A stretch of 64,000 nucleotides of DNA from Heteronotia binoei. Lineage: Eukaryota. This document shows positions 27,479 to 47,481 of this stretch, one piece after another (the stretch's first letter is position 1; each line of letters opens with the position of its first letter). Below the pieces are notes generated by a model. It did not search any database, was not told the origin of the DNA, and saw only the letters and a list, made by a program, of their open reading frames with translations. The stretch covers positions 992,001 through 1,056,000 of the forward strand of contig NC_083229.1 in assembly GCF_032191835.1 (NCBI RefSeq). Direction: 5' to 3'. A program made the position numbers and the translations under genes.

Positions 27479-30400
27479 TCAGTGGCAGTTCAGACAATTG
27501 GGGTGGCATCTCTGCCCGTTGACGTTGCACCGGCAGCCTCCACTGGTGTCACCAGGGCCCTGCTCCGAGGGAGGAGAAGAAACACGAGAGTGGGTTAGAG
27601 CAGGCCAAGACACACGCGTTCCACATCCTACCAGAAACTCCGTGACTGTATCTACAGGCCTCCCATTTCCACCACCCCCGACCGCATCCAACAGTCCATT
27701 GTGTGTAGCCAAGCCCCACGCGATACTCGCATCTCTTCCAGCCCCTTGAAAAGGCATTTCTGCAGCCACAGTATCCTCCTGATGTGGTTAGAAGGATGAC
27801 TGGAAAGGCCAGAATGACAGAAAGGGGCAGCTTGCTGTAGACAAACCCAAAGGCAATGACACCAGCGGGGGTCACCTACAGCTCACCACTCAAGGCAGCC
27901 GGCGCATTATGGGAGACCAGCCGCTACCCATGCTGCACAGGGACCCTTCCCTCACACAGGCACTGGGAGCAGGGAGGGCGGGGCTAACCTTTCCTGCCTT
28001 ACAGGCAGCCTGTGCATCAAACCCAGTTCTCCCAGATAAGACAGCTCTGGCTGACCCAAGGCCATTCCAGCAGGTGCAAGTGGAGGAGTGGAGAACCAAA
28101 CCCGGTTCTCCCAGATAAGAGAGCTCTGGCTGACCCAAGGCCATTCCAGCAGGTGCAAGTGGAGGAGTGGGGAATCAAACCCGGTTCTCCCAGATAAGAG
28201 AGCTCTGGCTGACCCAAGACCATTCCAGCAGCTGCAAGTGGAGGAGGGGGGAATCAAACCCGGTTCTCCCAGATAAGAGAGCTCTGGCTGACCCAAGACC
28301 ATTCCAGCAGCTGCAAGTGGAGGAGGGGGGAATCAAATCCGGTTCTCCCAGATAAGAGTCTGCACTCTTCACCACCACACCAAACAGGCGCTCATTCAAC
28401 CACAATGTTCCAAAACCAGTGGACGGATATTTTGTCCTTCCAGAGCATTCAGTTGCTGACCTAAGAGCAGCAGTTCTCTTACAAGGGAATTTCAAAGGGA
28501 GATGAGAAAGAGACGGTCACTGCTGAATTGCAGCTGACAATGAAGCGCAAGACAAGGCATCCGCCTGGACTGAAGCGAGACGTTGGTTTCCTGTCTCACT
28601 ACTAAAGCTGATTTCTCCATGCCTACCATCCCTCTGCTTATCACATCTAATCCAGCCATATCTGCCATTGTCATCCGGCATCTGCAACCCCCCCCCCCTT
28701 CAAGATATAAGGGCAGATGGACTCCCATTCTAGCTGTGTCTGAAGAAGTGAGCGGGGACTCCCAAAAGCTCCTCCCCTGCGGCCACCAACTGTGCGAGTC
28801 TTTCAGGTGCTTCTGGACTGGCTCTTTTCTCCATGTCAGGAGTGTTCACCTGCCGTGGCCTTCCCAGCCTTGAAAGGAGCCTGGCTTGCACAGTGAAGGA
28901 AGCTGACAATTCTCAGGTTCTGCATCTCAGTCTACAAACCTTCATTCAGGCCAGCCCAAGCAGCACAGCCTTTCAGTTCTCCAGAGCTGGGTGCAAAAAA
29001 AAGCAGCTATCGCTAGCCACTGACCCCCCACCCCAAAACTCCTGCTTCTGACTTCCAGCCCCCCACGCCCTGCCTCCCTCAAGCCCTAAAATGTTGTGGT
29101 GAGCTGTAGGTGACCCCCAGTGAGTTGCAGACAGAAGCTTGAAAAGACCCCTCCCCCCCCCAGTAATATTCTGCTTGCTGAAGCATTTTGGAGAACCTGA
29201 CGCCCTACATACTGCGTCCGCTCTTTGGGTCTGTCTTGTATGGGATTTCCCACCATTCTTTCCAAAAGAACCCCCAAGGCAGCTAATGGACACAAATGAA
29301 GCATTGTAATAAAATACTAGAACGAAGCGTTTAGCCAGCCGCTGACAAAGCAGTGCCCCGTTTCAAGTCTCTCTACTGGTCAGCATCTAGGAGGCAGGTG
29401 GGGAGTCCCTGAAGCCTCGGGTTGGGAGCGCGTATGCCAGGATCCTGCCCCTTCCCACACAATCGCCTCTGGGAGCGGCAGGCCAGAACCTGATGCCAAG
29501 ACGGACTGAGCACTTGCAACCGATGCTCCCTCTCTAGCTATGGAGTCTTGTGAGCAAAAAATCTCCTTTGTGAGCTACCAGCATTAAAGCTGTGAGTGAG
29601 CAACTTGGCTCCTGTATCAATGATTGTGCTCGGGCCCTCCTTCCTGAGCGAAGGCAAAAATGTGTGAGCTGGAGGCTTAAAAACTGCGCTAGCTCACACT
29701 AACTCAGCCTAGAGGGAACTCTGTTTGCAACGCTCTCGGGTGCAAGTTTACTTTCGCTCTGCAGAGCCCTGCACCTTTCTTCCTTCTAAGCCTCACCAGA
29801 CATTGGCCGTGCCCTTTCAAGTTTATCTTTCCAATCACAGGGCTGGGCTAGAAACAATGCCATAAAAAAATACTCAACCAGTGAGAACCGGCATTCTGTG
29901 TGTGCACTTTTATTGCGACAGCGACAGAACCCTGAGTGACTCCCCCTGGAGGCTGCCCGCCCCATCCAAGCCCTCCTTCCTGGAGGGAGGGAGAAATTCT
30001 GAGACTCATCAACATTCTTCCTGCCCAGCGGTGGCCGCGAACTCCAGAGACCCCCTGGGGATGATGCCTCACGCCCCAAGCAGCTGCTCTGCACACAGAA
30101 GGCCTTTGGCTCCGTCCCCATGGAAAGCAGCAGGTGATGGGAGGCACCTCCGCCTGACACCCCAGAGAGCCTCACCTGCCCACAGCAAAGGAGACTGAGG
30201 GAGGGGGTCTAACCAGGCAGCTTCAGGTGTAGAGGAGGAAAGGGAGGGGGCAAAGTGGGACCCACTGGCAACACCACCCTTGGCCAAGGCTGGAGAAGAG
30301 GCAGCCGTTGCACCAGGGAGGCAGGGCAGCTTGTGGGATCAGCCTGTTCTTGGTGCTGAAGAGGGGGAGGGGGTACCCGACCTCCCATCCTTTGGGCTCC

Positions 30401-33400
30401 TGCTCCAGCTCATCTCCCCTGCCCCACACACTCACCCCTGGCCCCCAGCGGGGCCCTTTGGTCACCCAGCAGATCTCCGTCTGGCAGACAGGACAGCGGA
30501 GCCAGTCGCAGCCACCCTTCTTCTGGACCACGATGCGGCAGACGGGGCAGTGCATGGCCTCCCCCAATTGCACCAGCGTCTGCGGAGGGGAAGGGGGAGA
30601 GGAACAGTTACGGCCTTGAAGGAAATGGGCCCAGCTGCCGGACCAGGAGGACAACAAGAAGAAACTGCAGGACTGAACTGTTAGGCATACGGGGGGACAA
30701 GGCTTCTGCAGAGGGAAGCCCTGCCTCGCCAACCTCTTGGAGTTCTTTACACAAACATGCACCCACCTCTGGGGGTGGGGAGTGAATAGATGGGACTCTT
30801 CTAGAACTCGGGAGCATCTAACAGGCAGTAGATCCAGGATGGACAAAAGGAAATAGTACTTTGCACAAGTGATTACAATGTGGGATTTGCTGCCAGACGG
30901 TGTGGTGATGGCCACAGGCACAGATGGCTTGAAAAGGAGGTGAGGCGGAGGTCTGCCGGCAGCTGCTAGACCTGGTGGTTGAGGGGAATAGCTCTGCATT
31001 CAGAGGCAGAAAACCTCCACCCCTCAGTGGGAAGACCTGGCCCTCTGTGCACTGTTGCAGGCTCTCCTGATTAACAGTTGGCCACTGGATGCGTGGGGAT
31101 GCTGAACTGGATGGATTGTTGGTTTGATCCACTAGGGCTCTTCCTACATCCCCACCTAGCCTCTAGGGAAGGCCTCCTTTCTCTGCAGCCACTGAACTCC
31201 AGACCAGCTAAGCCACAGCAGGAATGGACACGCCCCAAGCTCCGCAGTCGCTCACCTTGAGCATGTTGCTGGTCTCCCGGGCCTCAGCATCATTCTGGGC
31301 CTGGGACTGCAGCTTGTCCTGGTACTGCTTGCAGTTCATGCCCTCATGAATGGCCTGTGGGCGAGAAAAGGGGCTCTGTTTCTCTGGACACCTTTCCCAG
31401 GAGTGCGCCATTCCATTGGCTAGGGGGTTTTTTGTGCCAAGACCCCAGGAAGAAGAAAAGGCCTGCCAGGGTTCCCTGGGCTTGTGCCCCCTGCTAAGTG
31501 GGGGAGGGCAAGCACCCTCTGCATTCCCAGGCGGCGGCTGTCACAGGCAGGCTGAAGTGGGAGGAGCTGGTGTGGCTGCCTTGATCACTTCAGCTGGTCA
31601 CTGCCTCCCCTGCCCTGGTGGTCCCTTCTCTCCTCGCCTGGCCTAGAGCAACCCCCGAGGGAGGCTGCAGCTCAGTCAAGGAGGTTCGGATGCAGCACCG
31701 CAGGTTCTGTGTTCCCAAGAAACAGACATCTTTGCAATTTCCAGACAGGCTGACATGGAGGACTCAGAAAGGAAGTTGCAGAGCTGGACAAAATGGAGGA
31801 GGAGGAGGAGGAGGGGGCCACCAAAGCAATTACGGGGTTGGAGCAGCTTCCCCAGGAGAAAAAGGACATGGCAGAAGTTTATGGAATGGAGAACACTGAC
31901 AAAGAGAACTTTTTCTCCCCATCGCATCATTCTAAAAGTTGGGGCCACCCAGTGCAACTGATGGGCACAGCAGGTTCAGGGCAGAGAAAAAGAGACATTT
32001 CTTTTCTCAACGAAGTTGCAGCATTCTCTGCCAGTCAGTGTTCTCCTGGCCAGAAGCAGTGACGACTTTAAAAGGGCAGCCAGCCTCTAACCCTCGAGGG
32101 CAAGCCTCGCCCTCCCTGCCAGCTCTTGGACCTTCTGCAGCACAGCTCTTCTGGCCTCCTCCTGCGGGGCTGCTAGAAGGCGATACTAGCAAGGAGGGTC
32201 TTTGCCCTGGCTCACCTTGCACACCAGGCAGTTGAGTGCCCAGCAGATAGGGCAACGGAACTCATTGACATCGTCCTCGTAGATGCACCAGCCCAGGCAG
32301 TCGGCCGTCTGGCAGTGGTAGCTGTTCTGGGCGCGGCTCTCAGCCACCGCCAGCCTCCTCTCCAGGAAACGCTCGTACTCCTCCTGCGACACCAGCTGCA
32401 GAGAGAGGGGGGCTGCTTCAGTGTCCCTCGGGGGGGGGGAAGAGGCAGGCAGCAGCTGGGGGGACAGGACTCCCAAGGCCAAGTAGCCAGCAACTTCTGC
32501 ATTCTGCCAGAGGAGACAGACCACAAAACCCGCCAGGCCAGGAAGACAGATCACACCTCCAGCAGCTTGCCCACCACCCTCCAGGGCACAGCCACTCACC
32601 GCCCGGATCTCTCGGTCCTGTAGGTGGCTGCTGCAGGCGTAGCTGTCATCCCGGAAGGGGCAGGCCACCTGGGGCTCCTCGCTGCAGTTGATCAGCTGCC
32701 GCAGACAGTCCCTGCCCATAAGGACAGAAGAGAAACCATGTTGGAACAGGCCAATGACCCATCCAGCCCAACACTCTGGGTCACACAGTGGCCAAACAAA
32801 ACTAAACCAGGTGCCATCAGGAGGCCCATCAGTGGGGCCAGGACACTAGAAGCGCTCCCACTGTTGCCCGCCCCCCCAAGCACCAAGAATACAGAGCATC
32901 ACTGCCCCAGACAGAGCGTTCCATAAGAACATAAGAGAAGCCATGTTGGATCAGGCCAGTGGCCCATCCAGTTGCACACTCTGTGTCACACAGTGGCCAA
33001 AAAACCCAGGTGCCATCAGGAGGTCCATCAGTGGGGCCAGGACACTAGAAGCCCTCCCACTGTGCCCCCCCCCAAGCACCAAGAAGACAGAGCATCACTG
33101 CCCCAGATATAACAACATGAGAGAAGCCATGTGGGATCAGGCCAATGGCCCATCCAGTCCAACACTCTGGGTCACACAGTGGCCAAAACCCCCCCCCAAA
33201 ACCCCAAGTGCCATCAAGAGGTCCACCAGTGGGGCGAGGACACTAGAAGCCCTCCCACTTTGCCCCCCCAGCACCAAGAAGACAGAGCATCACTGCTCCA
33301 GACATAAGAGAAGCCATGTCGGATCAGGCCAATGGCCCATCCAGTGCAACACTCTGTGTCACACAGTGGCCAAAAAACCCAAGTGCCATCAAGAGGTCCA

Positions 33401-36400
33401 CCAGTGGGGCTAGAAGCCCTCCCACTGTGTCCCCGAAGCACTAGAATAAAGAGCATCACTGCCCCCAGACAAAGAACTCCAACAAGACGCTGTGGCATAT
33501 GCCAGAGAAAGGAAGGGATGAGCAGTCAAGCTTCTGGGTCCCCGCCCTCCGCCCCGTCCCCAGTCCCAGGCGGCAGGAAGGAGCCCCTCACCTGCAGAAG
33601 CTGTGGAGGCACTCCCGCAGCAGCACCCCCTGGCCCGGCTCCACGTCTAAGTAGCAAATGCGGCACTCCGTGGCCTCCTGGGTGGGGACCAGGGCCTCTT
33701 CGTCCAGCTGGCACAGCTGCTGGAAGTTCTGCCACCGCTCCTGCTCCAGGGCCTGTGCAGGGGGAGGAGACAAAGGCAGAGGAGCAACAGGCAGGCCTGA
33801 GGGCAGGGGGCTCAGCCCAAGCCAGGCCACAAGCCTCAGCAGCTTCGCCTGCAAACCTTTCACAACCAGAAGCCACCCGTCTGCAATGAGGGAGAGAGGA
33901 GGACCTGCTGGGATAAGAGACCAGGAAGCTGGAGGGCTGGGGAGAAGGGGGGGATGCCACTAATCACAGGGAACACTGCCCCTAGGAAGAAAGGTTCAGA
34001 CGCTTGGGGCTCTTTAGCTTGGAGAAACATCAACTGCGGGGTGACATGATAGAGGTTTACAAGATAATGCATGGGATGGAGAAGGTAGAGAAAGAAGTAC
34101 TTTCCTCCCTTTCTCACAATACAAGAACTCGTGGGCATTCAACGAAATTGCTGAGCAGTCGGGTTAGAACGGATAAAAGGAAGCACTTCACCCAAAGGGT
34201 GATTGACGTGTGGAATTCACTGCCACAGGAGGTGGCGGCGAATACAAGCATAGCCAGCTTCAAGAGGGGATTAGATAAACATATGGAGCAGAGGTCCATC
34301 AGTGGCTATTAGCCTTGGCGTATTGTTGGAACTCTCTGTCTGGGGCAGTGATGCTCTGTCATCTTGGCGCTTGGGGGGGCAACAGTGGGAGGGCTTCTAG
34401 CCCCACTGGTGGACCTCCTGATGGCATTTGGGGTTTTTGGCCACTTGGTGACACAGTGTTGGATCCAACAGGGCTTCTCTTATGTTCTTATGTGACACAG
34501 AGTCTTGGACTGGAGGGGCCACTGGCCTGATCCAACATGGCTTCTCTTATGTTCTTATGTGATACAGAGAGTTGGACTGGAGGGGCCACTGGCCTGATCT
34601 AACATGGCTTCTCTTATGTTCTTCTGTGACACAGAGTGTTGGACTGGAGGGTCCATTGGCCTGATTCAACATGGCTTCTCTTATGTTCTTATGATACAGA
34701 ATGTTGGACTGGAGGGGCCATTGGCGTGATCCAACAGGGCTTCTCTTATGTTCTTCTGTGACACAGAGTGTTGGACTGGATGGGCCATTGGCCTGATCCA
34801 ACAGGGCTTCTCTTATGTTCTTATGTGACACAGAGTGTTGGACTGGAGGGGCCATTGCCTGATCCAACATGGCTTCTCTTATGTTCTTATGATACAGAAT
34901 GTTGGACTGGAGGGGCCATTGGCCTGATCCAACAGGGCTTCTCTTATGTTCTTCTGTGACACAGAGTGTTGGACTGGAGGGGCCACTGGCCGGATCCAGC
35001 AGGGCTTCTCTTATGTTCTTCTGTGACACAGAGTGTTGGACTGGAGGGGCCACTGGCCGGATCCAGCAGGGCTTCTCTTATGTTCTTCTGTGACACAGAG
35101 TGTTGGACTGGAGGGGCCACTGGCCTGATCCAGCAGGGCTTCTCTTATGTTCTTCTGTGACACAGAGTGTTGGACTGGAGGGGCCACTGGCCTGATCCAG
35201 CAGGGCTTCTCTTATGTTCTTCTGTGACACAGAGTGTTGGACTGGAGGGGCCATTGGCCTGATCCAGCAGGGCTTCTCTTATGTTCTTCTGTGACACAGA
35301 GTGTTGGACTGGAGGGGCCACTGGCCGGATCCAGCAGGGCTTCTCTTATGCTCATCTTGCTTGGGAGGCAGGTCCATAAAGGTGCTGGAGATCCAGCTCC
35401 TGCCCTCTGGGTCCTCCAGGGCAACTCTGCACAAGGAGGCATCCAGCTGCTTGACTCCTCCCCAGCAACCTTCCCGCTCGAAGGGGCCTTGACAGTGCAG
35501 CCGTAGTTGGCCGAGGAGAGGCTTGTTCAGCTGATGGCCAGGACCTGCTGCACGTCTAGCCAGTGTTCCCTCTAGGCTGAGCTAGTGTGAGCCAGCTCAC
35601 TGTTCCTTAGCCTCCAGCTCACGCATTTTTGTCGCAGCTGAGGAAAATGGCCCCAGAGCACACTTATTTATGCAGCAGCCCACAACATTAGTGCCAGGAG
35701 CTCACAAAGCAGAATTTTTGCTCTCCACAGCTCAGAGGGAGCTCTGCTTCCAGCGTCAGGAAGAGGAGGAGCAGCAGCTTCCGCCCGCTCAGGGCAGCCA
35801 CAGGAGGCAAAGGCAACATCACCCTCCTGCCCTGAGGGCTTTTCCCTTCCACCTCCCAAGAACCCACCAGGTCAAGCCCTCTGAGCAGCAGCTGCATGAC
35901 CTGGAAGCTCCATGGCCAGAGGATCTTGGCTCCCTCCTTGTCTTCCCTGCCACACAGCAGGATAAAATGGGGGAGGGAAAGTTACAGGACCCCCAGCTGT
36001 TGGGAGGAATGAAATGGATGAGCCCAAACGACAGCACTGGTCCAACACCAGAGGGGAGTGGGGTGTGCCCGCCGGGACAGGAGGGGTTGCTGTCTGCCCC
36101 ACAAGAGACAGACTTACAGCTGTCTCGCATCTGGGGTATTTGTGGGTTTCCTGCACTGTGCAGGGGGTTGGACTAGATGACCCTGGAGGTACCTTTCAAC
36201 TCTAGGATTCTATGACTTCCCGCTCCATCACTTCAGCTACTCTGGCCATGCGACTCCCCCTCCACGCCCCCTGCAACCTCTGCGGACGGGTGGGCTTGGG
36301 GTGAGTGTGGTGTGCTGGTCAGGGCCAGAGGTTGGGATATCAGGGTCCCAATCCCTGGTGCCTGGGTGACCTGGGGCCAGTCACACCTGCATCTCAGCAG

Positions 36401-39400
36401 AACCTGCCTCACAAGGGGCTGGGGAGGAGGAAATGGAGGAGGGGAGAACCATATGGGGTAGTCGGAGATCAGCCGAGCTTCCGGGATGCATCCAGGGCAC
36501 CTTCCCTTGGTGTTCACGAGCCCTCAAAGTACATTCAAAAGCTGTGAGAAGGTGGGAGAGCCACAGACTGGGGCCACGGATCCCTTCCTCTGGGACTCCA
36601 CTTGTGACATGGGGCGTGGGGTCCAAAGAGGGTGGTTTTGTTTGTTTTAGTTTTGGGCACCACATTTTAAGAAGGCTCTAGACAAGCTGGAACGGGTCCA
36701 GAGGAGGGCAACGAAGATGGGGAGGGGTCTGGAGACCAAGTCCTATGAGGGAAGGTTGAAGGAGCTGGGCATGTTTAGCCTGGAGAGGAGACGGCTGAGG
36801 GGTGATAGGATCACCATCTTCGAGTACTAAGGGCTGTCATATAGAGGAGGGTGTGGAATTGTTTTCTGTGACCCAGAACTAGTGGGCTGAAATTAAATCA
36901 AAAGAGTTTCTGTTTAAATATAAGGAAGAACGTCCTGACAGAGCGATTCCTCAGTGGAACAGGCTTCCTCCTTGGGAGGTGGTGGGCTCTCCTTCCTTGG
37001 AGGTTTTTCAATAGAGGCTAGATGGCCATCTGACAGCAATGAGGATCCTCTAAATTTAGGGGGAGGTATTTGTGAATTTCCTGCATTGTGCAGGGGGTTG
37101 GACTAGATGATCCTGGGGGTCCCTTCCAGCTCTATGATTCTAATTGCACTACTGCAGATGCGCAGTAGAGTCCAGCAAGTGCCTTCCATTTACAACTTCA
37201 TAGTTCAGGTTCTGAATATGCATTTTGGCCTTAGTTTGTTGAGTGAAAGGGAACAGAAAGGAACTCGGGGGGGGGTGTTGAAATTGACAATGCTTTTTTT
37301 AATTGACAAGCAGCTGCAAAGCCCCCTTTTCCCTATTGTTGAGCACTTGGGGGATTCTCAGCCACTGTGAAAAATGGGAATGTGTCACGTGATCTCCTAA
37401 AGGGGGCCTTTTCGATCGCTTCCCCCCACTGGTGGAACAACTGCCAGGGGAAGTGCAGGCCTTGTGGGATCTTGGCCAGTTCTGCAGGGCCTGCAAAACC
37501 ATCTTCTTCCAGCTGGCCTTTAGTTAACAGAGTTACATACTTGATGTCAGCTAGAGATCAGTCAAATCGCCCTTTGTCAAGAAACCTCGACTAAAGACCA
37601 ACATCACTACTCTCCCCCCACCAAAAAATAAATCCTAGGCTTTCAACAAGGTACCTCACCAAAGAGTCCCAAGGAAACCTAGCAGTTGGGACTAGGGCAC
37701 AGGGCCTCCCCACATGGATTGAAAACTGGTTAAAGAACAGGAAAGCAAAACAGAGGCATAAATGGACAATTCTTGCAGCAGGGGAGGGGGGGGCACAGAC
37801 ACAGACAAAAAGAAATGCTTATTGACTCAAGGATAGTTAAACAGTGGAATTCACACTTGTAGATTTAAAAGGTTAGATTTCTAGCAAGGAGGTCCATCAA
37901 TGACTACATGACCCGGCTAGCAAAGGGAACTTGCACCTGCAGAGGCAGTGCCCCTCGGAAACCCCCTGCAGCACCAGAGGAGGGACTTGGCCTCTGTGCC
38001 CCGTTTGTGAGCCTTCCAGCTTAACTGCTGTGCAGCAGGAAGCTGCAGCCGATACGTGCGCAGGGTAGGGCTGATCCAGCAGAGTCCTTCTTGTGTTAGG
38101 CCTTCATGCAAGAAGCACAAATTTCTGGTCCTGTCCCTGAAGCCGTGTGGGCAGGGCCAAGAGGGAGGCTGGTGTTTAGGGGGAGGGGTTTGTGAGTTTC
38201 CTGCGTTGTGCAGGGGGTTGGACTAGATGGCCCTGGAGGTCCCTTCCCACACTAGGATTCTACGGTGGTGCACTCAAGAATGAGCACACAGAAAGCAGGC
38301 AATGCAGCCAGACTGGTTAGAGCTGCCCTCGGGCAGACAGAAAAGGTCTTGGTTTGGCCTCCCAAAGCATCAGTCCCTCCTCCTCCTCATCCTCCCCCCA
38401 GTGAGAGCAGCTGGGCATCAGCACATGACACCCTGTCCTTACCAGCCTCCCCCCACCCCACAAACTGAAGCAGCCCCGATACCAAGCTGGCCTTTCTGGT
38501 CCACAGGAATCATTTAATAGAACAAGGTGCTCATTCTCCAAGAGTCTTCAAATGTACAAACACTTTACAGAAATAAAACCCGCCTGAAAAGGGCACTTGA
38601 AACTTCAACGCCAGACAAATCACAGTGTTCAGTGCAAGAAGGCGGCCAGTGGCCTCTCCCAGCATGCATCGCTCCACGGCACTCTCCCCCGTGGCTCACA
38701 GTGACACGAATGGCCCGAGGAGGCCAAGGCCTGCAGACTGAGACATGGCTGCGCTGCCAGAGCCCCAAAGGCACAGGCCCATCCCCGGGCAAGGGAAAGG
38801 GTCGGGGAGACTGCAGGGCAAAGGGGCCTCCTTCCCTCGCAGCTTCAGTGGCAAGTTTAAAAGGCAGAAGCTGGCTTGAAGTCAGCCCAAGAGGGGGGGG
38901 GGCTGCCCGCGCAGCCTCCAGCACTAGCGATGGCCCCCGCCAAGTGCTCTGGCATCTCCTCTCTCCGCAGCTATGGGATGCAGTGCCACGGCCAGGCAGC
39001 GCCTGCTTCTCAGAGGGCCAGAGGAAAGGAACCTGCTTCAAGGGTCACCTGAGCACAGGCAGCTTGTCAAGGTACCCCAGAATGCAGCAGGCTTGTGGTG
39101 GATCCTTCACAGAGGAACTGGGAGAAGGCAGAACTGGGGGGCCAGATCCCCTCCCCGCAAAAGCCTGGCTCAGGCCTGCAAGGTCCATCCCAGGGAGAGG
39201 TTCTTCCGCCCAAGAGCCAAACCAGACCCTTGAATGTGCAAGCTGTGGCCCCCTTTCTCAAGGAGGCTTTGGGTTTGCAGGACTGAGCCGGAAGGCAGAG
39301 GCCACAGACCATAATGCCCAGTCCTGAACTAGGGATGGGGTGCAGCAAGGCTCCTGCACCGTTAGGAGTGTCACTGCCACACAAGCCACTTGTGGCACCA

Positions 39401-42400
39401 CAGAGAAACCCTGAGCCCCTCTGCTCCCTCTTCTGCAGCACCCCACGGAACTGCCCCCTCCCCCCAAGGCTCAGTGGGCAACAGAAACATTGAACGGGGG
39501 ATTTTCAGAAGCAAAACAAGGAACCGGAGAGCCCGCCCATGGTCCAGCCTGCACTTGGCTCCTCAGGGCAGCCGCTGCTGCAACCGTCTCCCAGGAGGTC
39601 AAGCAACGCAGGCCCAGCTGCAAAGCAGGAGCTCTGCTGCTCAAGGCTCCGGGTGCCGGCTAGGAGAACTCCGAGGAAAGGTGGATGAAGTCATCCAGGG
39701 AGCCGGGGCCGCCGGCACAGGGCAGAGCAGAACTGTCTTCTCTCCTTCCCTTTTCCTGCCGCAAGAGAAAAAAGAAAGAAGAGAAGAGAGTCACGGGGTG
39801 TCGGGGCTCACCTGAAGAGGTAAAGGCCCAGAAGGAAATATGACTTTCCCCCTGTTTTTCCACAGTGGAGGGAGGAAAATGAATTTTTGGAATGCATCAA
39901 AAAAAAAAGAAGCCAACATTCATTTAGATTTCTTTTAAAGCAAGATTTTACTAAGAATGCGCAGCAGTGACATCTACTAAGGAATCTACCTCATTAGAGC
40001 AATTTTATGTATGCTGTGGGCACATATGCATTTTCAAGTATGTATTTATTGCTTACACGATTTGTCTATGGTAGGCTCTCTGGATAATACACTATCACGT
40101 AACACACCCAACACTTCCAAGTTGTAAAGCTGAACATCCAAAGGAGCGATGAGCTCTGCCACTTGCATGCTTAAGGCCTCTCTTCCCCCTACTTTTCAGA
40201 AGGCAACACACCAAGACACACGCATTACGGCAGCACAGAATACAACGCTTGGCAGTTCTCCCTTGCTTGTAGACAACAGCCTCTGCCCTTTGAAATCCCA
40301 TCAATGTGTCAAATATTAGTTATCAATGATGCACTTTATGTTGTTACAGCAAGAACAGTATTGCATGCTCGTTTTGGCAGCACATACATGATAGAGAAGA
40401 TTAGCCTGGCCCCTGCGCAAGGATGACACAAATTTGCAATGTTCCAATTCCAATTTTACTCCCCAAAAAACCCATTTGGAAAACGATGCAGGCCAAATCA
40501 TAGAGTTAGAAGTGACCTACAAGGTCATCTAGTCCAACCCCCTGCACGATGCAGGAAACTCATCAACCCCTCCCCCTAAATTCACAGGATCCTCATTGCT
40601 GTCAGATGGCCATCTAGCCTCTGTTTCAAAACCTCCAAGGAAGGAGAGCCCACCACCTCCCAAGGAGGAAGCCTGTTCCACTGAGGAATCGCTCTAAGTG
40701 TCAGGAATCCTAGAGTTGGAAGGGACCTCCAGGGTCATCTAGTCCAACCCCCTGCACAATGCAGGAAACTCAGCAACCCCTCCCCCTAAATTCACAGGAT
40801 CTTCATCGCTGTTAGATGGCCATCTAGCCTCCGTTTAAAAACCTCCAAGGAAGGAGAGCCCACCACCTCCCAAGGAGGAAGCCTGTTCCACTGAAGAACC
40901 GCTCTAACGGTCAGGAAGTTCTTCCTAATGTTGAACTGGAAACTCTTTTGATTTAATTTCAACCCATTGGTTCTGGTCGCACCTTCTGGGGCCACAGAAA
41001 ACAATTCCACAATTTTGTCTTGCTAAGAAAGTATGGCTGAAATCTGTTTCCGCAACGTGCTCCTTCAAACTGTCTAAACCGTTATCCTTCCCATGGCTTC
41101 AAAATTTGCAGAAACGTCAGGCATTCTCAGCTCAGCCTAGGCCTTCTTCACCAGGCCAGGGCCCCTTTCACCCCTCAGCATCTGGTTTCTGCCACGGCCA
41201 CCCCAGCAACACTCCAAGCCACACCAGCATCTCCTTCCTCAAGCATCTCACAAGCAATCAGCCCCAGGGGCCCAGTCACCCCACAAGCTGTCAGGTGGGA
41301 ACTCCCAGCCATGCTCAGCTACATGCCTGGGGTCCCTTCCCTTCCCTTGACCTGTGCCAGGCACTCCCACGCCACTGCCTCACATGGCCAACCACCGCCT
41401 GCCAGGAAGGGGGAGGAGGAGGAAGCCAGGAGTAACGTCACTTCTTGCATTTTCCCTCTCACTTCCCCACCACTAATTCGCAAACCAGTCTTAACATCCA
41501 CACAGAAAAAAGAACCCCACAGGCAGGCAAGGATCAGGTCACAAACACAACGAAAGACAGACGGTGCCAACGGAGGAGGGTCCAGCCAGGCAGCCCCTGG
41601 GCAGAGGCAGAAGCAGCCACCTTACCTGCTGGTACCGCACAATCCCCTCCTTCTCCTGCTGCATCCGCCACAGCTCCATTTCATCGGGTCTGTAGCTGCC
41701 AGGAACCACATAGCTGGCAGGCCGGTCGGTGCTGCACATTTCACAGCCGGGGCGGGTGGGCTTGTTGATGAAGGTGCAGGTCGGACAGGACCAGCCGGCC
41801 TGTAAGGTAAGTGGAGGAAGAGGCCCATGGGATCCCCCCAACTGGCTCCACACAGCCGTGGCCCAGAAGGCACAACGTGGGAAAGGGAGCCCTCCAGGGA
41901 AGAGGGGCAGCCCTGTGGGAGGGAGGCAAGAGAGTCTACCTGGACAGGGGAAGGGGGGGCAACAGCTGCAGCCGGAAGAGCTGGAGGCTGGTTGGGAAGG
42001 AGGTCGGTCAGCTGCAGCACACTCAACCTCTCCTCGATGTCATTCTTCTTACTTCCATGAGACGCACCTGCTGGCCAGAAATGCATCAGGGAGAAGCGTT
42101 ACCTACTTGCAGCCAACAGCCTGCTGATCCAGACAAGCCCTGGCCTCGGGGAATGAAGCCTCGGTTCACCCACCTGTCTTTGGCAGAGAGTTGGACGAAG
42201 GCCGCCCAGCGTTGGAGCCATCCGAGAGCGACGAAGGGGCCGGCTGCAGCACCACCCAGTCTTTGTCCTCTTTGTAGCGCTGCTCCGAGAGACTGGCCAC
42301 TTTTGCAGTCAGCAGGTAGAGAAAGGCCGTGTCTCCATCCTTGCGAATCCCGTAGGAGCCCACTGTCCGGTCGTCGACACAGAGGCACTGACCAATAATC

Positions 42401-45400
42401 CAGCGCTGGACACTGGGGTGGAACCCATAATCCTGAAAGACCTTGGAAAGGACAGAAAACAGAGGCAAGGTTAGGACTAGAAAAGCCGCAGTTGCTCGTC
42501 TCTCTTTTGCAGCACTCAGAAGATCTTGGGACTCTTCTCTGACATCTTTCTTGAGGCTGAAAGGCAGAAGAACAGGTTTCTCTGGGGTCCCCTTTCTGCT
42601 TCCCAGTCCTTGGACTCCATCCCCACACTACCTTCTGCCTGAGAGCCGCGATTGTGGTGTGCGTCTGCACCGGGATGGTGATGTTGGCTGAGCACATAGC
42701 ATCCTCCACGCCCACCTTCATGCTACAAGAAAGAACAGCCGTGAGCAAGATGGCACGCTGCAAGATGACCCTGGCCCAAATCACTACTGCCAAAGCCAAG
42801 CTTCCCCTCCCCCGAGCTCCATGCTCCACACACACCTGATCTCACTCGCGGGGTAGCAGGACTCCTTTGGAAGGATGCGCAGAGCCGCTTGTTGCTGAGC
42901 CAGTGCTGTGGCACATCGAACAGCCTCTTCCTGGTTCCCAAGTTCAATAGCCGTGGAAAGCTGGAAAGCCAGGTCTTCTAAGGAGATACGGACACAAAGG
43001 CAGGCAAAAGTCAGCCACCCTTCCACCCCATCTTGGCTGGACAGGCTGCCCCCTCCACCTCGTGGGGTGATTTCAGTGAGCCACACACCCTGTTCCCTTC
43101 TCAGCTTGAAGAAATGGCTGCATTCTACAGGCTTTCCTCCACTATGCATTGGTGCACTCCCCAAGCCGATTTCTAAGAGCTCCAAAGAGGCTGCTTGCTT
43201 TTATAGTAACACATTCTTCTTACTCGCTCCCGTTGCCACTAGCCAACAATCTCTCAAGGAGCCCACCTGTTTCAAGCACCAGTTCCCTAACCCAAAGCGG
43301 GCAGAAGGAAGTTCCCAGCCAGCCCACTGATGCCTCCTTCCACAAGGCCTGGGCGGACTAGGTAGCCAAGGAAGCAAGTCTGATCAGCTGAGAAAGCAAA
43401 AAAACCCAAGCCTCACTTTTTTTCTAGCAGAAAGACCGGGCAAATTTCCCAGGCTGCACAATTTAGATCTTTCTTAGTAAGTTTCCTCAGTATTCATTCT
43501 CCACCGCAGCTGGCACGCAACGGCTCCAGAGGGAGCCACAGGCCGCCCTCCACCTGCACCTTTCCCAGTCAAGCTGGCCACCAACCTTTCCTGGCCAGTT
43601 CCGCAGGCAGAGAGCCCTCAGGCTCTGACACAGGCAGAGAGTTCGTAGCAGCTGAAAGATTATGAGGAGACCGTCCTGTCGCCACGTGGGGGCCCTCCGC
43701 AGCTGGGGAGAGACAAGGAGAACAATCTCAGAGGACAGAAGCCCTCGGCTCCTCAGACCAGCTCAAGAAGGGGGCAGGCCTGAAATCCTAACACTGGTGA
43801 GAAACCAAAGCAGAATACAAAATGCTTATTGCGGGCAAAGAACGAATCTACTGGTTCGTGTTCCCTAGGAAGTGCTCGTTCCAGCTAAAACCAGCTGCTG
43901 CATCCAGCAGAGGCTACTGGCAGCCTGGCACACCACCCTGAATCACAGTACTGATCTTTGATGGGGGACACTGTGCATGAGAAATGAGAGGGACGGCAGT
44001 TCACAAATGGCTGCAGGATCTGAAAGCAGCTATTCCTCTCAAGGACAGGATGGGCAATGCCTGGGGAGTGCATCCACAGGCAACTCCTGGGTGTACACCG
44101 GGCACTACCAGCAAATCTCTGTACATGTTTCACAGGGCCAGAAACCTGACACAGCCCCACACATCAGATTGGTGCAGCCTGTGTACTGCTCGCCAAAATC
44201 ATTTGGAACAGTACAACATAGTCTCTGGCTTGTGCGATCTGAAGCCCCTCATCACAATGCAGAGCTGTACTGCAACGCCTCCTCCGACTAATGCTACCGG
44301 GCTGTGGTGGATCCGGCCCACGAACCCACACTTGTGGTCCCAGTGGAGCAACATCTTGTCACATGGAGGATGCACGCCCCTTGCCTCCTGGCCACAGAAA
44401 TGTGCTTTGCATGAGCCAGCCAGCTCTTCTAGCCAGAGTAGGGACCACAAATGAGCCCCTCCCTGAGACTTGCCAGGACCTTCCTGGGCAGCAGCTGACC
44501 TTTCTGGACCTCCCAAAGGGAGCTGCTGACGACTGCCCACCACTTCTGGGCCTCGTGCTCATCCTCAAAATGAAAGACAATGGGGTCATCCGGGCGAGCC
44601 AAGACTTTCAGCTCATGGCATGTGGGCGTCTTCACTTCATAGGAAATCTCTCTGAGGCTGTACTCCACCAGGCTCTAGAGGCAAAATATAAGAACATCAG
44701 AAGAGCCCTGCTGGATCAGAACGATGATCCATCTAGTCCAGCATCCTGCCTCACACAGCAGCCAGCCAGTTCCCCCGGAGGGCCAACAATTGGGCAGAGA
44801 GGCCGAGGCCTTCCCCTGAGAAGAGCATCAGAAGAGCCCTGCTGGAGCAGAACAGGGAGGGTCCATCTAGTCCAGCCTCCTGTCTCACACAGGGGCCAGC
44901 CAGTTCCTCTGGAGGGTCAACAATTGGGCAGAGAGGCTGAGGCCTTCCCCTGAGAAGAACATCAGAAGAGCCCTGCTGGGTCAGACCAGGGAGGGTCCAT
45001 CTAGTCCAGCCTCCTGTCTCACACAGAGACCAACCAGTTCCTCTGGAGGGCCAACAACAGGGCAGAGAGGCTGAGGCCTTCCCCTGAGAAGAACATCAGA
45101 AGAGCCCTGCTGGGTCAGACCAGGGAGGGTCCATCTTGTCCAGCTTCCTGCCTCACACAGTGGCCAACCAGTTCCTCTGGAGGGCCAAGAAAAGGGCAGA
45201 GAGGCCGAGGCCTTCCCCTGAGAAGAACATCAGAAGAGCCCTGCTGGGTCAGACCAGGGAGAGACCATCTAGTCCAGCCTCCTGTCTCACACAGTGGCCA
45301 ACCAGTTCCTCTGGAGGGCCAGCAACAGGCAGAGAGGCTGAGGCTTTCCCCTGATGTTGCCTCCTGTCATTCAGAGGTTAACAGTCTCCAAATGTGGAGG

Positions 45401-47481
45401 CTTCACTTGACCATCATGGCTAGTAACCATTGACAGACTTATCCTCCCTGAATCTCTCTCATCCCCTTTTAAAGTTCTTTATTCCAGAGACCAATTGCTG
45501 AGCAGACAGGTTAAAACGGATAAAAGGAAGTACTTCTTCACCCATAGGGTGATTAACATGTGGAATTCACTGCCACAGGAGGTGGTGGCGGCCACAAGCA
45601 TAGCCACCTTCAAGAGGGGTTTAGATAAAAATATGGAGCACAGGTCCATCAGTGGCTATTAGCCACAGTGTGTGTGTATATATAAAATTTTTTGCCACTG
45701 TGTGACACAGAGTGTTGGACTGGATGGGCCATTGGCCTGATCCAACATGGCTTCTCTTATGTTCTTGCATCCTCAGGCAACAAATTCCACAGTTTAATCC
45801 TCCGAAGTGAGCGGAAGAAAGTCCTTCGGTGGGCATGCAAGGTCAAGTCACTCTTACCCACCTGGACCGCAGTCCAACCCCCTCCCCAGCAAACTACCCA
45901 AAAGCTACACCAAAGGTGGCCAAACTGCGGCTCAGGAGTCTGACTCTTTCACACATATTGTGCAGCACTTGAAGCCCCCCCACCCCCTTTAATGCCTGGC
46001 TTGGAGAAGAAGAAGAAGATATTGGATTTATATCCCGCCCTCCACTCTGAAGAGTCTCAGAGCGGCTCACAATCTCCTTTCCCTTCCTCCCCCCCAACAG
46101 ACACCCTGTGAGGTAGATGAAGATACTGGATTTATATCCCGCCCTCCACTCCAAAGAGTCTCAAAGCGGCTCACAATCTCCTTTCCCTTCCTCCCCCCCA
46201 ACAGACACCCTGTGAGGTAGATGAAGATATTGGATTTATATCCCGCCCTCCACTCCAAAGAGTCTCAGAGCGGCTCACAATCTCCTTTACCTTCCTCCCC
46301 CACAACAGACACCCTATGAGGTAGATGAAGATATTGGATTTATATCCCGCCCTCCACTCCAAAGAGTCTCAGAGCAGCTCACAATCTCCTTTCCCTTCCT
46401 CCCCCGCAACAGACACCCTGTGAGGTAGATGAAGATATTGGATTTATATCCCGCCCTCCACTCCAAAGAGTCTCAGAGCGGCTCACAATCTCCTTTACCT
46501 TCCTCCCCCACAACAGACACCCTGTGAGGTGGGTGAGGCTGGAGAGGGCTCTCACAGCAGCTGCCCTTTCAAGGACAACCTCTGCCAGAGCTATGGCTGA
46601 CCCAAGGCCATTCCAGCAGCTGCAAGTGGAGTAGTGGGGAATCAAACCCGGTTCTCCCAGATAAGAGAGCTCTGGCTGACCCAAGGCCATTCCAGCAGGT
46701 GCATGTGGAGGAGTGGGGAATCAAACCCGGTTCTCCCAGATAAGAGTCTACACACTTAACCACTACATCAAACTGGCTCTCTTTACCTTCTCTCCCCCCC
46801 ACAGCTTACAATCTCCTTTACCTTCCTCCCCCACAACAGACACCCTGTGAGGTAGGTGGGGCTGAGAGAGCTCTCCTAGAAGCTGCCCTTTCAAGAACAG
46901 CTCTGCCAGAGTTATGGCTGACCCAAGGCCGTTCCAGCAGCTGCAAGTGGAGGAGTGGGGAATCAAACCCGGTTCTCCCAATTAAAAGTTTTCGAACCTA
47001 AAAAGAAGACTGTACATTTATACCCCACCCTTCTCTCTGAATCAGAGACTCAGAGCGGCTCACAAGACACCCTGTGAGGCGGGTGGGGCTGAGAGAGCTC
47101 TGACAGAAGCTGCCCTTTCAAGGACAGCTCTGCCAGAGTTATGGCTGACCCAAGGCCATCCCAGCAGGTGCAAGCGGAGGAGCGGGGGATCGAACCCGGT
47201 TCTCTCGGGCAGGAGGGCCGGAGAAGGCACGGCGGCTGCTGGCAGAAGAAGCGCTGCCTCCTCACCGGCTCTGGGCCCGAGTCCTGGCCGCCCCTCAGGC
47301 CGAGGCGGAAGCGGTCGTGGCCGGGCGCGGCGCTGAGCTGGAGGAGGAGGAGGCGCCGCCCGGTGCGGCCCAGGAGCGGCAGCGGGGAGGGCCGAGGCAC
47401 CCAGGCCCGCGCCGACGCCAGCAGCTGCTGCGGCTGCCCCGCCGAGGAGGACGAGGAGGAGCCCCCCGCCGCAGCCGCCAT
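27479..47481 (-). CDS. SHARPIN: SHARPIN orthologue with C-terminal HOIL-1L/RBCK1-like RBR E3 module (PH-LTM-UBL-NZF-RING1-IBR-RING2), 14 exons, ~679 aa
   Basis: Minus-strand exons 47481-47266, 44674-44500, 43651-43586, 42977-42836, 42722-42632, 42441-42174, 42070-41940, 41799-41626, 33752-33592, 32711-32600, 32395-32216, 31354-31256, 30579-30436, 27559-27479. All GT-AG, phases compatible, 2040 nt. PH-like N-terminus, LTM ([15 protein letters not shown]), UBL ([12 protein letters not shown]), NZF ([20 protein letters not shown]), RING1 (CRIC..CLHSFCRDC), IBR, RING2 ([14 protein letters not shown]), end NCLNCH*. Occupies the SHARPIN position between CYC1 and MAF1. Confidence 0.92.
28010..28385 (-). 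repeat. Squam3-like SINE with the 79-bp head/B-box segment repeated 5 times
   Basis: aaacccggttctccc-like motif at 28019, 28098, 28177, 28256 and 28335. Confidence 0.88.
32755..33480 (-). mobile_element. Cluster of CR1 3' tails (four partial copies) in SHARPIN intron 9
   Basis: Repeated cataagaacataagagaagccatgttggatcaggcc..cactgccccaga. Confidence 0.85.
33965..35350 (+). mobile_element. CR1 3' fragment followed by ~13 tandem copies of its 67-bp terminus (34470-35350)
   Basis: ORF 34004-34312 [29 protein letters not shown]; same array unit as 5056-6580. Confidence 0.92.
36660..37135 (+). mobile_element. CR1 3' fragment (family of the CYC1 array)
   Basis: Degenerate [24 protein letters not shown] end and ggggttggactagatga tail. 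Confidence 0.82.
39660..39755 (-). CDS. Candidate alternative terminal exon for a short SHARPIN-type isoform ([31 protein letters not shown])
   Basis: On -, a ~29-nt pure pyrimidine tract (39790-39762) preceded by GTGAC and followed by GCGGCAG|GAA. Phase 0, like the NZF exon donor. Stop at 39662-39660, then a repeat-free 1.1-kb stretch ending in TGTA motifs and ATTAAA (38518-38513). Confidence 0.5.
   Translation of the reverse strand, partial: EKGRREDSSALPCAGGPGSLDDFIHLSSEFS
40365..40456 (+). pseudogene. Degenerate U6 snRNA copy
   Basis: tgctcgttttggcagcacata..gagaagattagcctggcccctgcgcaaggatgacac matches U6 with substitutions and an internal deletion. No obvious PSE/TATA. Confidence 0.85.
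40500..41010 (-). mobile_element. CR1 3' fragment with duplicated tail
   Basis: Minus ORF 40792-41010 [18 protein letters not shown]..; two tail copies. Confidence 0.85.
44690..45360 (-). repeat. Tandem array (5 x ~134 bp) of a third CR1-type 3' terminus
   Basis: aagagccctgctgg at 44701, 44832, 44966, 45100 and 45234. Confidence 0.88.
45480..45770 (+). mobile_element. CR1 3' fragment
   Basis: ..[17 protein letters not shown] and ttctcttatgttctt tail. Confidence 0.82.
46004..47205 (-). repeat. Cluster of Squam3-like SINEs including 5 tandem 104-bp tail units
   Basis: gaagatattgg-like motif at 46015, 46119, 46223, 46327 and 46431; further partial SINEs to 47205. Confidence 0.88.

Follow-up and report, generated by a model that had tools for sequence, protein, structure and literature searches.

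Mammalian SHARPIN is tethered to HOIP and HOIL-1L by two elements, the LTM (LUBAC-tethering motif), which binds HOIL-1L, and the UBL, which binds the HOIP UBA. The human protein comprises 387 aa and ends after the NZF, having PH, UBL and NZF domains only (PMC3375506, PMC9084887). In human HOIL-1, the product of RBCK1, roles have been described for the catalytic cysteine C460, for W462, which replaces the usual His, for E471 and for the C-terminal H510, while the Zn2/Cys6 cluster follows the pattern C-x19-C-x-C-x6-C-x3-C-x2-C (PMC9834252).

A third set of relatives is found in public gene annotations. Models of ~700 aa with a PH-to-RBR architecture, named ‘sharpin’ or ‘RBCK1-like’, occur in squamates, turtles, birds, amphibians, coelacanth, ray-finned fishes, sharks and chimaera. 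RefSeq models of the fused protein number more than 100, and the name ‘sharpin’ is given to this architecture in some twenty squamates as well as in many other vertebrates. The long SHARPIN-RBR form is already known from these annotations, and the sequence-only reading of the present locus overrated its novelty, although its mention of a sharpin/rbck1-related gene in teleosts was right, as ~710-aa teleost ‘RBCK1’ models carry Sharpin_PH. No statement of an RBR in non-mammalian SHARPIN was found in the literature searched in full text, which lay outside subscription journals.

The window, a 64,000-nt stretch of Heteronotia binoei DNA on contig C7, carries on its minus strand (47481..27479) a single protein-coding gene, a SHARPIN orthologue with a HOIL-1-type RBR. 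Its 14 exons, separated by introns that are all GT..AG, join into one 696-aa ORF running from an ATG at 47481 to a stop codon that ends at 27479, and encode in order Sharpin-PH, LTM, UBL, NZF with a helical tail, RING1, IBR and RING2. The model aligns near full length (76% identity, 691 columns) with the 704-aa Pogona vitticeps RefSeq ‘sharpin isoform X1’, through which the small exon 3 was uncovered; the two are collinear across the 14 exons and show no difference of substance. The introns, ORF and collinearity bear out the one-frame, 14-exon gene that had been proposed from the letters, and the ORF and domain pattern is well beyond chance. The exons are:

47266..47481, minus strand: exon 1, ATG and N-terminal half of Sharpin PH (aa 1-72), from the ORF and GT donor; aligns to Pogona sharpin residues 17-75
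44500..44674, minus strand: exon 2, C-terminal half of Sharpin PH (aa 73-130), 76% identical to Pogona
43586..43702, minus strand: exon 3, linker (aa 131-169), 59% identity by tblastn with Pogona sharpin; AG/GT sites and frame agree
42836..42977, minus strand: exon 4, LTM (aa 170-216), from Pfam and splice sites
42632..42722, minus strand: exon 5, first part of UBL (aa 217-247)
42174..42441, minus strand: exon 6, remainder of UBL and linker (aa 248-336), 77% identical to Pogona
41940..42070, minus strand: exon 7, linker (aa 337-380)
41626..41799, minus strand: exon 8, NZF and its helical tail (aa 381-438), ending in phase 0 at a consensus donor
33592..33752, minus strand: exon 9, helix and first half of RING1 (aa 439-491), with RING matches; 82% identical to Pogona
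32600..32711, minus strand: exon 10, second half of RING1 (aa 492-529), 90% identical to Pogona
32216..32395, minus strand: exon 11, IBR (aa 530-589), 95% identical to Pogona
31256..31354, minus strand: exon 12, end of IBR and linker helix (aa 590-622), with an RNA joint
30436..30579, minus strand: exon 13, RING2 with predicted catalytic Cys C646, W648 and E657 (aa 623-670)
27479..27559, minus strand: exon 14, Zn2/Cys6 cluster cysteines, terminal His H696 and stop codon, from the translation

Minor ambiguities concern two acceptors, that of exon 6 (42441, which homology favours, or 42432) and the tandem acceptor of exon 7 (42070 or 42067). The surroundings of exon 1 have a GC content of 0.68 and a CpG observed/expected ratio of 0.68.

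The N-terminal half of the protein shares its PH, LTM, UBL and NZF with mammalian SHARPIN. Pfam detects Sharpin_PH (PF16764) on exon 2 (E 1.7e-21), which also matches the human SHARPIN PH structure 4EMO, as well as the LTM on exon 4 (E 3.1e-19), Zn_ribbon_RanBP, the NZF zinc finger, on exon 8 (E 2.4e-08) and, exon by exon, pieces of RING and IBR. The best PDB match of the exon 6 UBL is that of SHARPIN (5Y3T_C, 68.7 bits, vs 55.6 bits for the HOIL-1L UBL; 5X0W is also a top match), and the NZF and tail of exon 8 match the HOIL-1L NZF-plus-tail structure 3B08 at 78 bits. The neighbours are CYC1, tail-to-tail with SHARPIN (Cytochrom_C1 exons C7:1017379-1018378, plus strand, window 25379-26378), and MAF1, head-to-head with it (Maf1 exons C7:1056398-1058492, plus strand, from 64398, just right of the window), which is the human gene order. 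Domains and neighbours together confirm the earlier assignment of this PH-to-RBR gene to the SHARPIN locus. Unlike mammalian SHARPIN, which has neither the NZF tail helix nor RING1-IBR-RING2, the window gene has six extra exons (33752-27479) for them, and its frame runs on through RING1, IBR and RING2; ending after the NZF defines the mammalian form of SHARPIN only.

With HOIL-1/RBCK1 the protein has in common the LTM-UBL-NZF(+tail)-RBR body, the catalytic Cys/Trp/Glu, the C-terminal His, the Zn2/Cys6 spacing and the RBR intron positions, with 47-78% identity across the RBR domains. RBCK1 differs in being without a PH domain, in being a distinct gene and in forming a sister clade. Whether this genome has a separate RBCK1, a point raised by the sequence-only reading, can be answered: a complete RBCK1 lies on another contig (G000:C2:9444599-9488198) and shares its exon breaks with SHARPIN-RBR, down to the intron that parts the NZF and RING1 exons, which in RBCK1 is 13.7 kb long. 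The window gene is therefore not the RBCK1 orthologue, given its place in the sister clade and an RBCK1 locus elsewhere.

Both catalytic features singled out in the sequence-only reading are present. The catalytic-Cys peptide aligns to QKKDGCDWIRC of human HOIL-1, the RING2 exon matching human HOIL-1 (exon 13 scores 83 bits against the RING2 structures 8BVL, 7YUJ and 8EAZ), and the translation ends ...NCLNCH before the stop. Human C460, W462, E471 and H510 correspond here to C646, W648, E657 and H696, and their equivalents are invariant in all 22 SHARPIN-RBR sequences compared. All zinc-binding Cys/His of RING1-IBR-RING2 are kept, amounting to 35 of the 35 Cys/His columns that are invariant in RBCK1, columns that 21-22 of 22 SHARPIN-RBR sequences retain, and the Zn2/Cys6 cysteines (C659-x19-C679-x-C681-x6-C688-x3-C692-x2-C695) are spaced exactly as in HOIL-1. 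Sequence comparison marks the RBR as the best-conserved part of the SHARPIN-RBR protein, with RING2 the top domain; between the squamate window gene and chimaera, RING2 is 78% identical, vs 33% for the PH domain. At the position preceding Gly-Cys, Gly is found here, and Asp or Glu in most members of the SHARPIN-RBR clade and in HOIL-1.

The joint between the two halves of the gene lies across the 7.9 kb from exon 8 to exon 9. The pair 41626 to 33752, the boundary already suggested by the sequence-only reading, is the top-scoring donor and acceptor and is in phase 0 (CAG/GTAAGG ... CTGCACAG/GCC); beyond 41626, the predicted exon 9 side of the joint reads GCCCTGGAGCAGGAG... RNA mapped to the exon 9-13 side gives this predicted joint indirect support. 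Contigs of RNA runs X1 and X2 splice exons 9-10-11-12-13 exactly at the modelled sites. Exon 9 is covered by X1 record 1 and X2 record 5 and is joined to exon 10, contig letters 27-191 passing directly into 192-302; the following joints are at 32395/32600 (exon 10/11, CT..AC ends, in X1, X2 and a single raw read of X4), 31353/32215 (exon 11/12, in X1, X2 and a single raw read of X5) and 30579/31256 (exon 12/13), and the X1 contig extends 269 nt beyond exon 13. Raw-read depth across the RBR exons is ~1-2, and all three differences between RNA contigs and assembly in these exons are synonymous. X1 also contains 0.40 of the words sampled from the exon 4-8 stretch. Upstream of exon 9 the contig match enters the intron by 3 nt (CAG) and then ends, which is the expectation if exon 8 (...GCAG) precedes exon 9.

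Alternatively, the locus could hold two genes: exons 1-8 would form a short mammal-like SHARPIN and exons 9-14 an independent RBR-only gene whose promoter lies in the 7.9 kb between them, and the unbroken frame would be a coincidence or a relic. RBR-only ‘RING-type domain-containing protein’ entries of the UniProt/Ensembl type do exist, in Varanus (327 aa), Chelonoidis (320 aa), Zosterops (317 aa) and Anas (233 aa), but these match the RBR from exon 10 on only with nothing in frame matching their N-termini: that of Anas is off-frame exons 7-8 (E 1.7e-16) joined straight to exon 10, and that of Zosterops is off-frame exon 9 (E 2.4e-11). The Anas and Zosterops entries are mis-framed models of the long gene, and were rejected as examples of a second gene. 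Exons 9-11 have no Met, and the 26 extra 5' letters that the RNA contigs carry before exon 9 are absent from 30400-36399, so that the exon 9 acceptor is spliced to sequence more than 2.6 kb upstream. The homologous NZF/RING1 intron is present in RBCK1, and the RefSeq models are not alone in encoding the fused protein: in another species, a Logan run-assembly contig of 2,990 nt has it as an uninterrupted 696-aa PH-to-RBR ORF. The 30-nt exon 8/exon 9 junction had no exact match in JGI metagenome contigs and, at up to three mismatches, none in the animal's own genome in a search for a retrocopy; neither outcome is informative. Two genes at this locus are most improbable.

Given one gene, its RBR might still not work as a HOIL-1-like LUBAC ligase, being instead a pseudo-enzyme, a structural module or a ligase outside LUBAC. 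No SHARPIN RBR has a reported activity, mammals do without the domain, and the Gly before Gly-Cys departs from the Asp/Glu of HOIL-1 and most clade members; against this, dead catalytic domains usually shed such residues, whereas here the zinc ligands and the equivalents of C460, W462, E471 and H510 have stayed invariant for ~450 million years in a protein whose RING2 is its most conserved domain, and the LTM and UBL, which in mammals are the tethers to HOIP and HOIL-1L, are retained. Such a reading is unlikely. Somewhat less so, if still improbable, is the production of both a long ligase and a short scaffold, through an alternative last exon or read-through in intron 8. Read-through of the exon 8 donor would reach a stop after 28 more codons, with AATAAA/ATTAAA signals at 40957 and 40050, but the homologues listed included no short isoform, in a search whose length filter would hide most of them. 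The explanation preferred overall, one SHARPIN orthologue whose RBR is predicted to be a HOIL-1-like ligase in LUBAC, is held with high confidence.

The evolutionary setting is given by a tree with invertebrates as outgroup, in which a SHARPIN-RBR clade (SH-aLRT 99) and an RBCK1 clade (95) each span chondrichthyans to tetrapods. The window gene groups with squamate SHARPINs, as the C2 gene does with squamate RBCK1s, and the ‘sharpin’ and ‘RBCK1-like’ proteins of Pogona, Anolis, Notechis, Chelonia, Strix, Latimeria and Callorhinchus share both clade and architecture with the window gene. This indicates that SHARPIN and RBCK1 are paralogues that were already distinct in the jawed-vertebrate common ancestor. 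The two began as an LTM-UBL-NZF-RBR body, and their intron positions are common through the RBR, including the long phase-0 NZF/RING1 intron. With two sister clades each spanning the gnathostomes, the 387-aa mammalian SHARPIN is most simply read as the form that lost the RBR, which the non-mammalian lineages kept; on the tree, an RBR gain in non-mammals instead is very unlikely. The suggestion in the sequence-only reading of an ancestral paralogue truncated in mammals is supported by the long form extending from chimaera to birds, in a sister clade to RBCK1.

By homology to its mammalian counterparts, SHARPIN-RBR would dock on HOIP and HOIL-1 within LUBAC through its LTM and UBL, dimerise through its PH domain and bind Met1-linked di-ubiquitin through the NZF and its tail. 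The RBR would act as a HOIL-1-like RING/HECT-hybrid ligase, in which ubiquitin would be handed from an E2 to Cys646 and discharged onto hydroxyls (Ser/Thr or sugars), aided by His696 and the Zn2/Cys6 cluster. From the conserved residues we infer both ligase activity and LUBAC membership, and a non-mammalian LUBAC may accordingly contain three RBR subunits. A broader proposal, which we judge about equally likely to be right or wrong, is that SHARPIN serves throughout the non-mammalian jawed vertebrates as a second active HOIL-1-like LUBAC ligase, ester-forming and activated by Met1-ubiquitin, and that the paralogues lost complementary parts, RBCK1 shedding the PH domain and mammalian SHARPIN the RBR; the ancestral LUBAC would then have had three RBR enzymes. 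For the PH loss in RBCK1 there is a weak lead, a mollusc N-terminus that may resemble Sharpin-PH. Pfam gave only a faint Sharpin_PH match among invertebrate RBCK1-like N-termini, in a chiton (E 0.16), and vertebrate PH domains compared with mollusc N-termini as profiles scored a probability of 71% (E 3.8e-5); an AlphaFold model from a 3-sequence alignment, with six strands and then a long helix, has a pLDDT of 41 and is unreliable for fold search. In birds, an RBCK1-clade protein was not found among the matches listed, and SHARPIN alone might supply HOIL-1-like activity there.

The window gene itself is ordinary and already annotated, and its value lies in drawing attention to the RBR of non-mammalian SHARPIN. 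If the proposal is true, the textbook LUBAC, with a catalytic HOIP, a ligase HOIL-1 and a non-catalytic scaffold SHARPIN, is a mammalian special case, and outside mammals the HOIL-1-type module has SHARPIN as a second natural host. Knock-down or knock-out of ‘sharpin’ in zebrafish, Xenopus, chicken or reptiles would remove a probable E3 ligase besides a scaffold, which affects how such knock-outs are to be read, and comparison of the SHARPIN and RBCK1 paralogues could reveal the features that serve ester-bond ubiquitination.

The window contains no N, and SHARPIN and HOIL-1 (RBCK1 product) peptides are recognisable in open-frame pieces on its minus strand, from 47481 to 27479. These pieces were joined by a splice-site search in which frame was kept, with strong GT-AG pairs at each step, and one small exon (43702-43586) was gained by aligning the RefSeq Pogona vitticeps protein P0207 (704 aa, sharpin isoform X1) to the window. 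The final model is a single 696-aa ORF of 14 exons with introns that are all GT..AG, and is 76% identical to the Pogona protein over 691 columns. The sequence-only reading had proposed a SHARPIN gene running in one frame from PH, LTM, UBL and NZF into a complete RBR; its coordinates and 14-exon count were borne out, its 41626/33752 boundary is correct in the frame-keeping splice model, and both peptide strings it quoted (the RING2 Cys stretch and the C-terminal end) were found as stated.

Exons of the SHARPIN model, with the basis of each
47481-47266, minus, exon 1, frame-keeping splice model
44674-44500, minus, exon 2, frame-keeping splice model
43702-43586, minus, exon 3, P0207 alignment
42977-42836, minus, exon 4, frame-keeping splice model
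42722-42632, minus, exon 5, frame-keeping splice model
42441-42174, minus, exon 6, frame-keeping splice model
42070-41940, minus, exon 7, frame-keeping splice model
41799-41626, minus, exon 8, frame-keeping splice model
33752-33592, minus, exon 9, frame-keeping splice model
32711-32600, minus, exon 10, frame-keeping splice model
32395-32216, minus, exon 11, frame-keeping splice model
31354-31256, minus, exon 12, frame-keeping splice model
30579-30436, minus, exon 13, frame-keeping splice model
27559-27479, minus, exon 14, frame-keeping splice model

Exon 7 begins at a tandem CAG|CAG acceptor (42067-42070), which could gain or lose one residue (Ala).

Single exons matched the Pfam families Sharpin_PH (1.7e-21), LTM (3.1e-19) and RanBP/NZF (2.4e-08), along with RING and IBR fragments. 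Among solved structures, exon 2 resembles the human SHARPIN PH domain (4EMO), the UBL exon scores higher against SHARPIN than against HOIL-1L (68.7 vs 55.6 bits), all 57 residues of the NZF exon match the HOIL-1L NZF and helical tail (3B08, 78 bits), and the RING2 exon matches human HOIL-1 RING2 (83 bits; 8BVL, 7YUJ, 8EAZ). Cytochrome c1 (CYC1; four exons, 25379-26378, plus strand) lies tail-to-tail with the gene, ~1.1 kb past its stop codon, and plus-strand MAF1 exons start ~400 bp past the right window end. In human, too, CYC1 is followed by an opposite-strand SHARPIN and then by MAF1, which identifies this gene as the SHARPIN locus.

The 7.9-kb intron 8 (...VRYQQ|ALEQ...) separates the NZF-tail exon from the RING1 exon. 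The same genome carries a separate, complete RBCK1 on another contig (~C2:9444599-9488198), answering a question raised by the earlier reading; it has LTM, UBL, NZF and RBR, and is without a PH domain in the 50 kb examined. Throughout the RBR its coding sequence is split into exons at the same points of the protein as in the window gene, and a 13.7-kb intron between its NZF-tail exon (...LRQYEQ) and RING1 exon is the counterpart of intron 8. A fusion of two neighbouring genes at this point was therefore rejected, the junction being an intron inherited with the LTM-UBL-NZF-RBR gene body. Translation continued past the exon 8 donor meets a stop after 28 more codons, and poly(A) signals lie at 40957 and 40050. 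A separate RBR-only gene was suggested by short entries from Varanus, Chelonoidis, Zosterops and Anas, in which the match to the window protein starts at exon 10. The N-terminus of the Anas entry is off-frame exons 7-8 joined straight to exon 10 (E 1.7e-16), and that of the Zosterops entry is off-frame exon 9 (E 2.4e-11); all four are mis-framed versions of the one long gene and were rejected as support for a separate one.

For four of six H. binoei RNA runs, reads and contigs were aligned to 30400-36399. Contigs from X1 (995 nt) and X2 (695 nt) span exons 9 to 13. The joints 32395/32600, 31353/32215 and 30579/31256 are exact, each with plus-strand CT..AC ends, exons 9 and 10 are contiguous in contig coordinates, and the X1 contig reaches 269 nt past exon 13. 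An independent study (X4 and X5) adds single raw reads over two of the joints, at a depth of ~1-2. Both contigs carry 26 extra letters 5' of exon 9 that are absent from the 2.6 kb upstream, so that the predicted exon 9 acceptor is spliced to a more distant exon. The contig match extends exactly three bases (CAG) past this acceptor and no further, as expected since exon 8 ends ...GCAG and intron 8 ...ACAG. X1 also contains 0.40 of sampled words from the exon 4-8 stretch. A 2,990-nt Logan run-assembly contig from another species holds an unbroken 696-aa ORF with Sharpin_PH, LTM and NZF matches, whose alignment with Pogona sharpin covers 99% of its length; an ORF uninterrupted at such length indicates that this contig is most likely transcript-derived. 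The RNA data from H. binoei support the exon 8/9 joint, short of proof. RNA contigs and reads differ from the assembly at three sites in the RBR exons (30514, 32264 and 32342, plus-strand A>G), all synonymous third-codon changes (Gly644, Asn573 and Ala547, respectively), which are probably polymorphisms and not editing, because the transcript strand shows T>C.

In the exon 9/10 intron and intron 8, 32800-33400 and 34000-35400 hold repeat copies with enormous summed RNA-contig depth, many 'opposite strands' joints link about 33002-33377 to 34314, and near-identical minus-strand ORFs recur every 67 nt at ~34547-35442. The pattern resembles an abundant interspersed repeat whose end is tandemly reiterated, and not gene sequence. 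Between SHARPIN exon 1 and MAF1, an AT-rich block (GC 0.37) at 48039-50034 (plus strand) contains ORFs of 485 and then 191 aa, which look like LINE-type retrotransposon coding sequence.

Using exons 10-11 as query against 1.84 billion representative proteins returned bird sharpin isoforms X1/X2 (702 and 683 aa; Sharpin_PH, LTM, UBL, NZF, RING), sturgeon and paddlefish RBCK1-like proteins of the same architecture (718 aa), and the four short RING-type domain-containing protein entries. Two further searches used full-length orthologues as queries, and among the matches listed were Sharpin_PH plus RBR proteins of about 650-750 aa from ~twenty squamates (e.g. Anolis, Sceloporus, Elgaria, Notechis, Crotalus, Vipera and Zootoca), turtles, many birds, caecilians, frogs, salamanders, coelacanth, bichir, sturgeon, gar, bowfin, many teleosts, sharks, rays and one chimaera. 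The NZF-RBR half also retrieved ~510-aa RBCK1 from mammals, reptiles, amphibians, fishes and sharks (58-62% identity). Among the best 120 NZF-RBR relatives listed, RBCK1-clade proteins came from mammals, turtles, crocodilians, squamates, tuatara, amphibians and fishes, and none from birds; every bird match, including some annotated as 'HOIL1 protein, partial', was a SHARPIN-clade protein. RBCK1 may be absent from birds, or their assemblies may have failed to capture it.

In a maximum-likelihood tree (47 sequences, 524 columns, quick IQ-TREE method, six invertebrate sequences as outgroup), SHARPIN-RBR and RBCK1 form sister clades (SH-aLRT 99 and 95), and within each the branching follows the species tree, chondrichthyans through tetrapods. 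The window protein groups with squamate SHARPINs and the C2 gene with squamate RBCK1s. As both clades span chondrichthyans to tetrapods, the duplication is older than the gnathostome radiation, a date that would fit the vertebrate genome duplications. Mammalian SHARPIN has 387 aa, with PH, UBL and NZF (PMC3375506, PMC9084887). On these phylogenetic grounds the long form of SHARPIN is the general state, and the mammalian protein would most simply be the truncated one, in keeping with the earlier suggestion that mammals shortened it.

Mollusc RBCK1-like proteins (P0456 from a chiton, P0459 and P0030 from abalone) have 150-230 residues ahead of the LTM that are weakly Sharpin PH-like (Pfam E 0.16; hhalign probability 71%, E 3.8e-5), and the AlphaFold model of this N-terminus is of low confidence (pLDDT 41). 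The PH domain may predate the SHARPIN/RBCK1 duplication. Should the similarity be genuine, the ancestor would have had the PH-LTM-UBL-NZF-RBR architecture, and the vertebrate paralogues would have lost complementary ends.

In HOIL-1, the active-site Cys C460 is essential, H510 is required in ligase-to-substrate transfer, and a Zn2/Cys6 cluster (C-x19-C-x-C-x6-C-x3-C-x2-C) is needed for activity (PMC9834252). The window protein matches the six-Cys spacing exactly, and C460, W462, E471 and C-terminal H510 correspond to its C646, W648, E657 and H696, equivalents of which are invariant in 22/22 SHARPIN-RBR proteins; the catalytic Cys and terminal His are thus kept, as first noticed. When 22 SHARPIN-RBR and 20 RBCK1 proteins are aligned, the window protein keeps every Cys/His column that is (near-)invariant in RBCK1, namely NZF C199/202/213/216 and the RING1, IBR and RING2 sets; 21-22 of the 22 SHARPIN-RBR members keep them too. 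Identity to the chimaera orthologue is 78% in RING2, 66% in IBR, 60% in RING1, 60% in NZF and 33% in PH; judged by sequence conservation, the RBR is the most constrained portion of the protein.

The window gene is an ordinary member of a family annotated many times in RefSeq and UniProt, and the SHARPIN-RBR architecture is already known at database level. No statement on an RBR in non-mammalian SHARPIN was found in a full-text literature whose coverage leaves out most subscription journals; the biological implication is seemingly little discussed, and easily tested. By analogy with the mammalian homologues, the LTM and UBL would anchor the protein on HOIL-1 and HOIP, the PH domain would dimerise, and the NZF and its tail would bind Met1-linked di-ubiquitin; the RBR would accept ubiquitin from an E2 at C646 and, assisted by H696, transfer it to hydroxyl acceptors.
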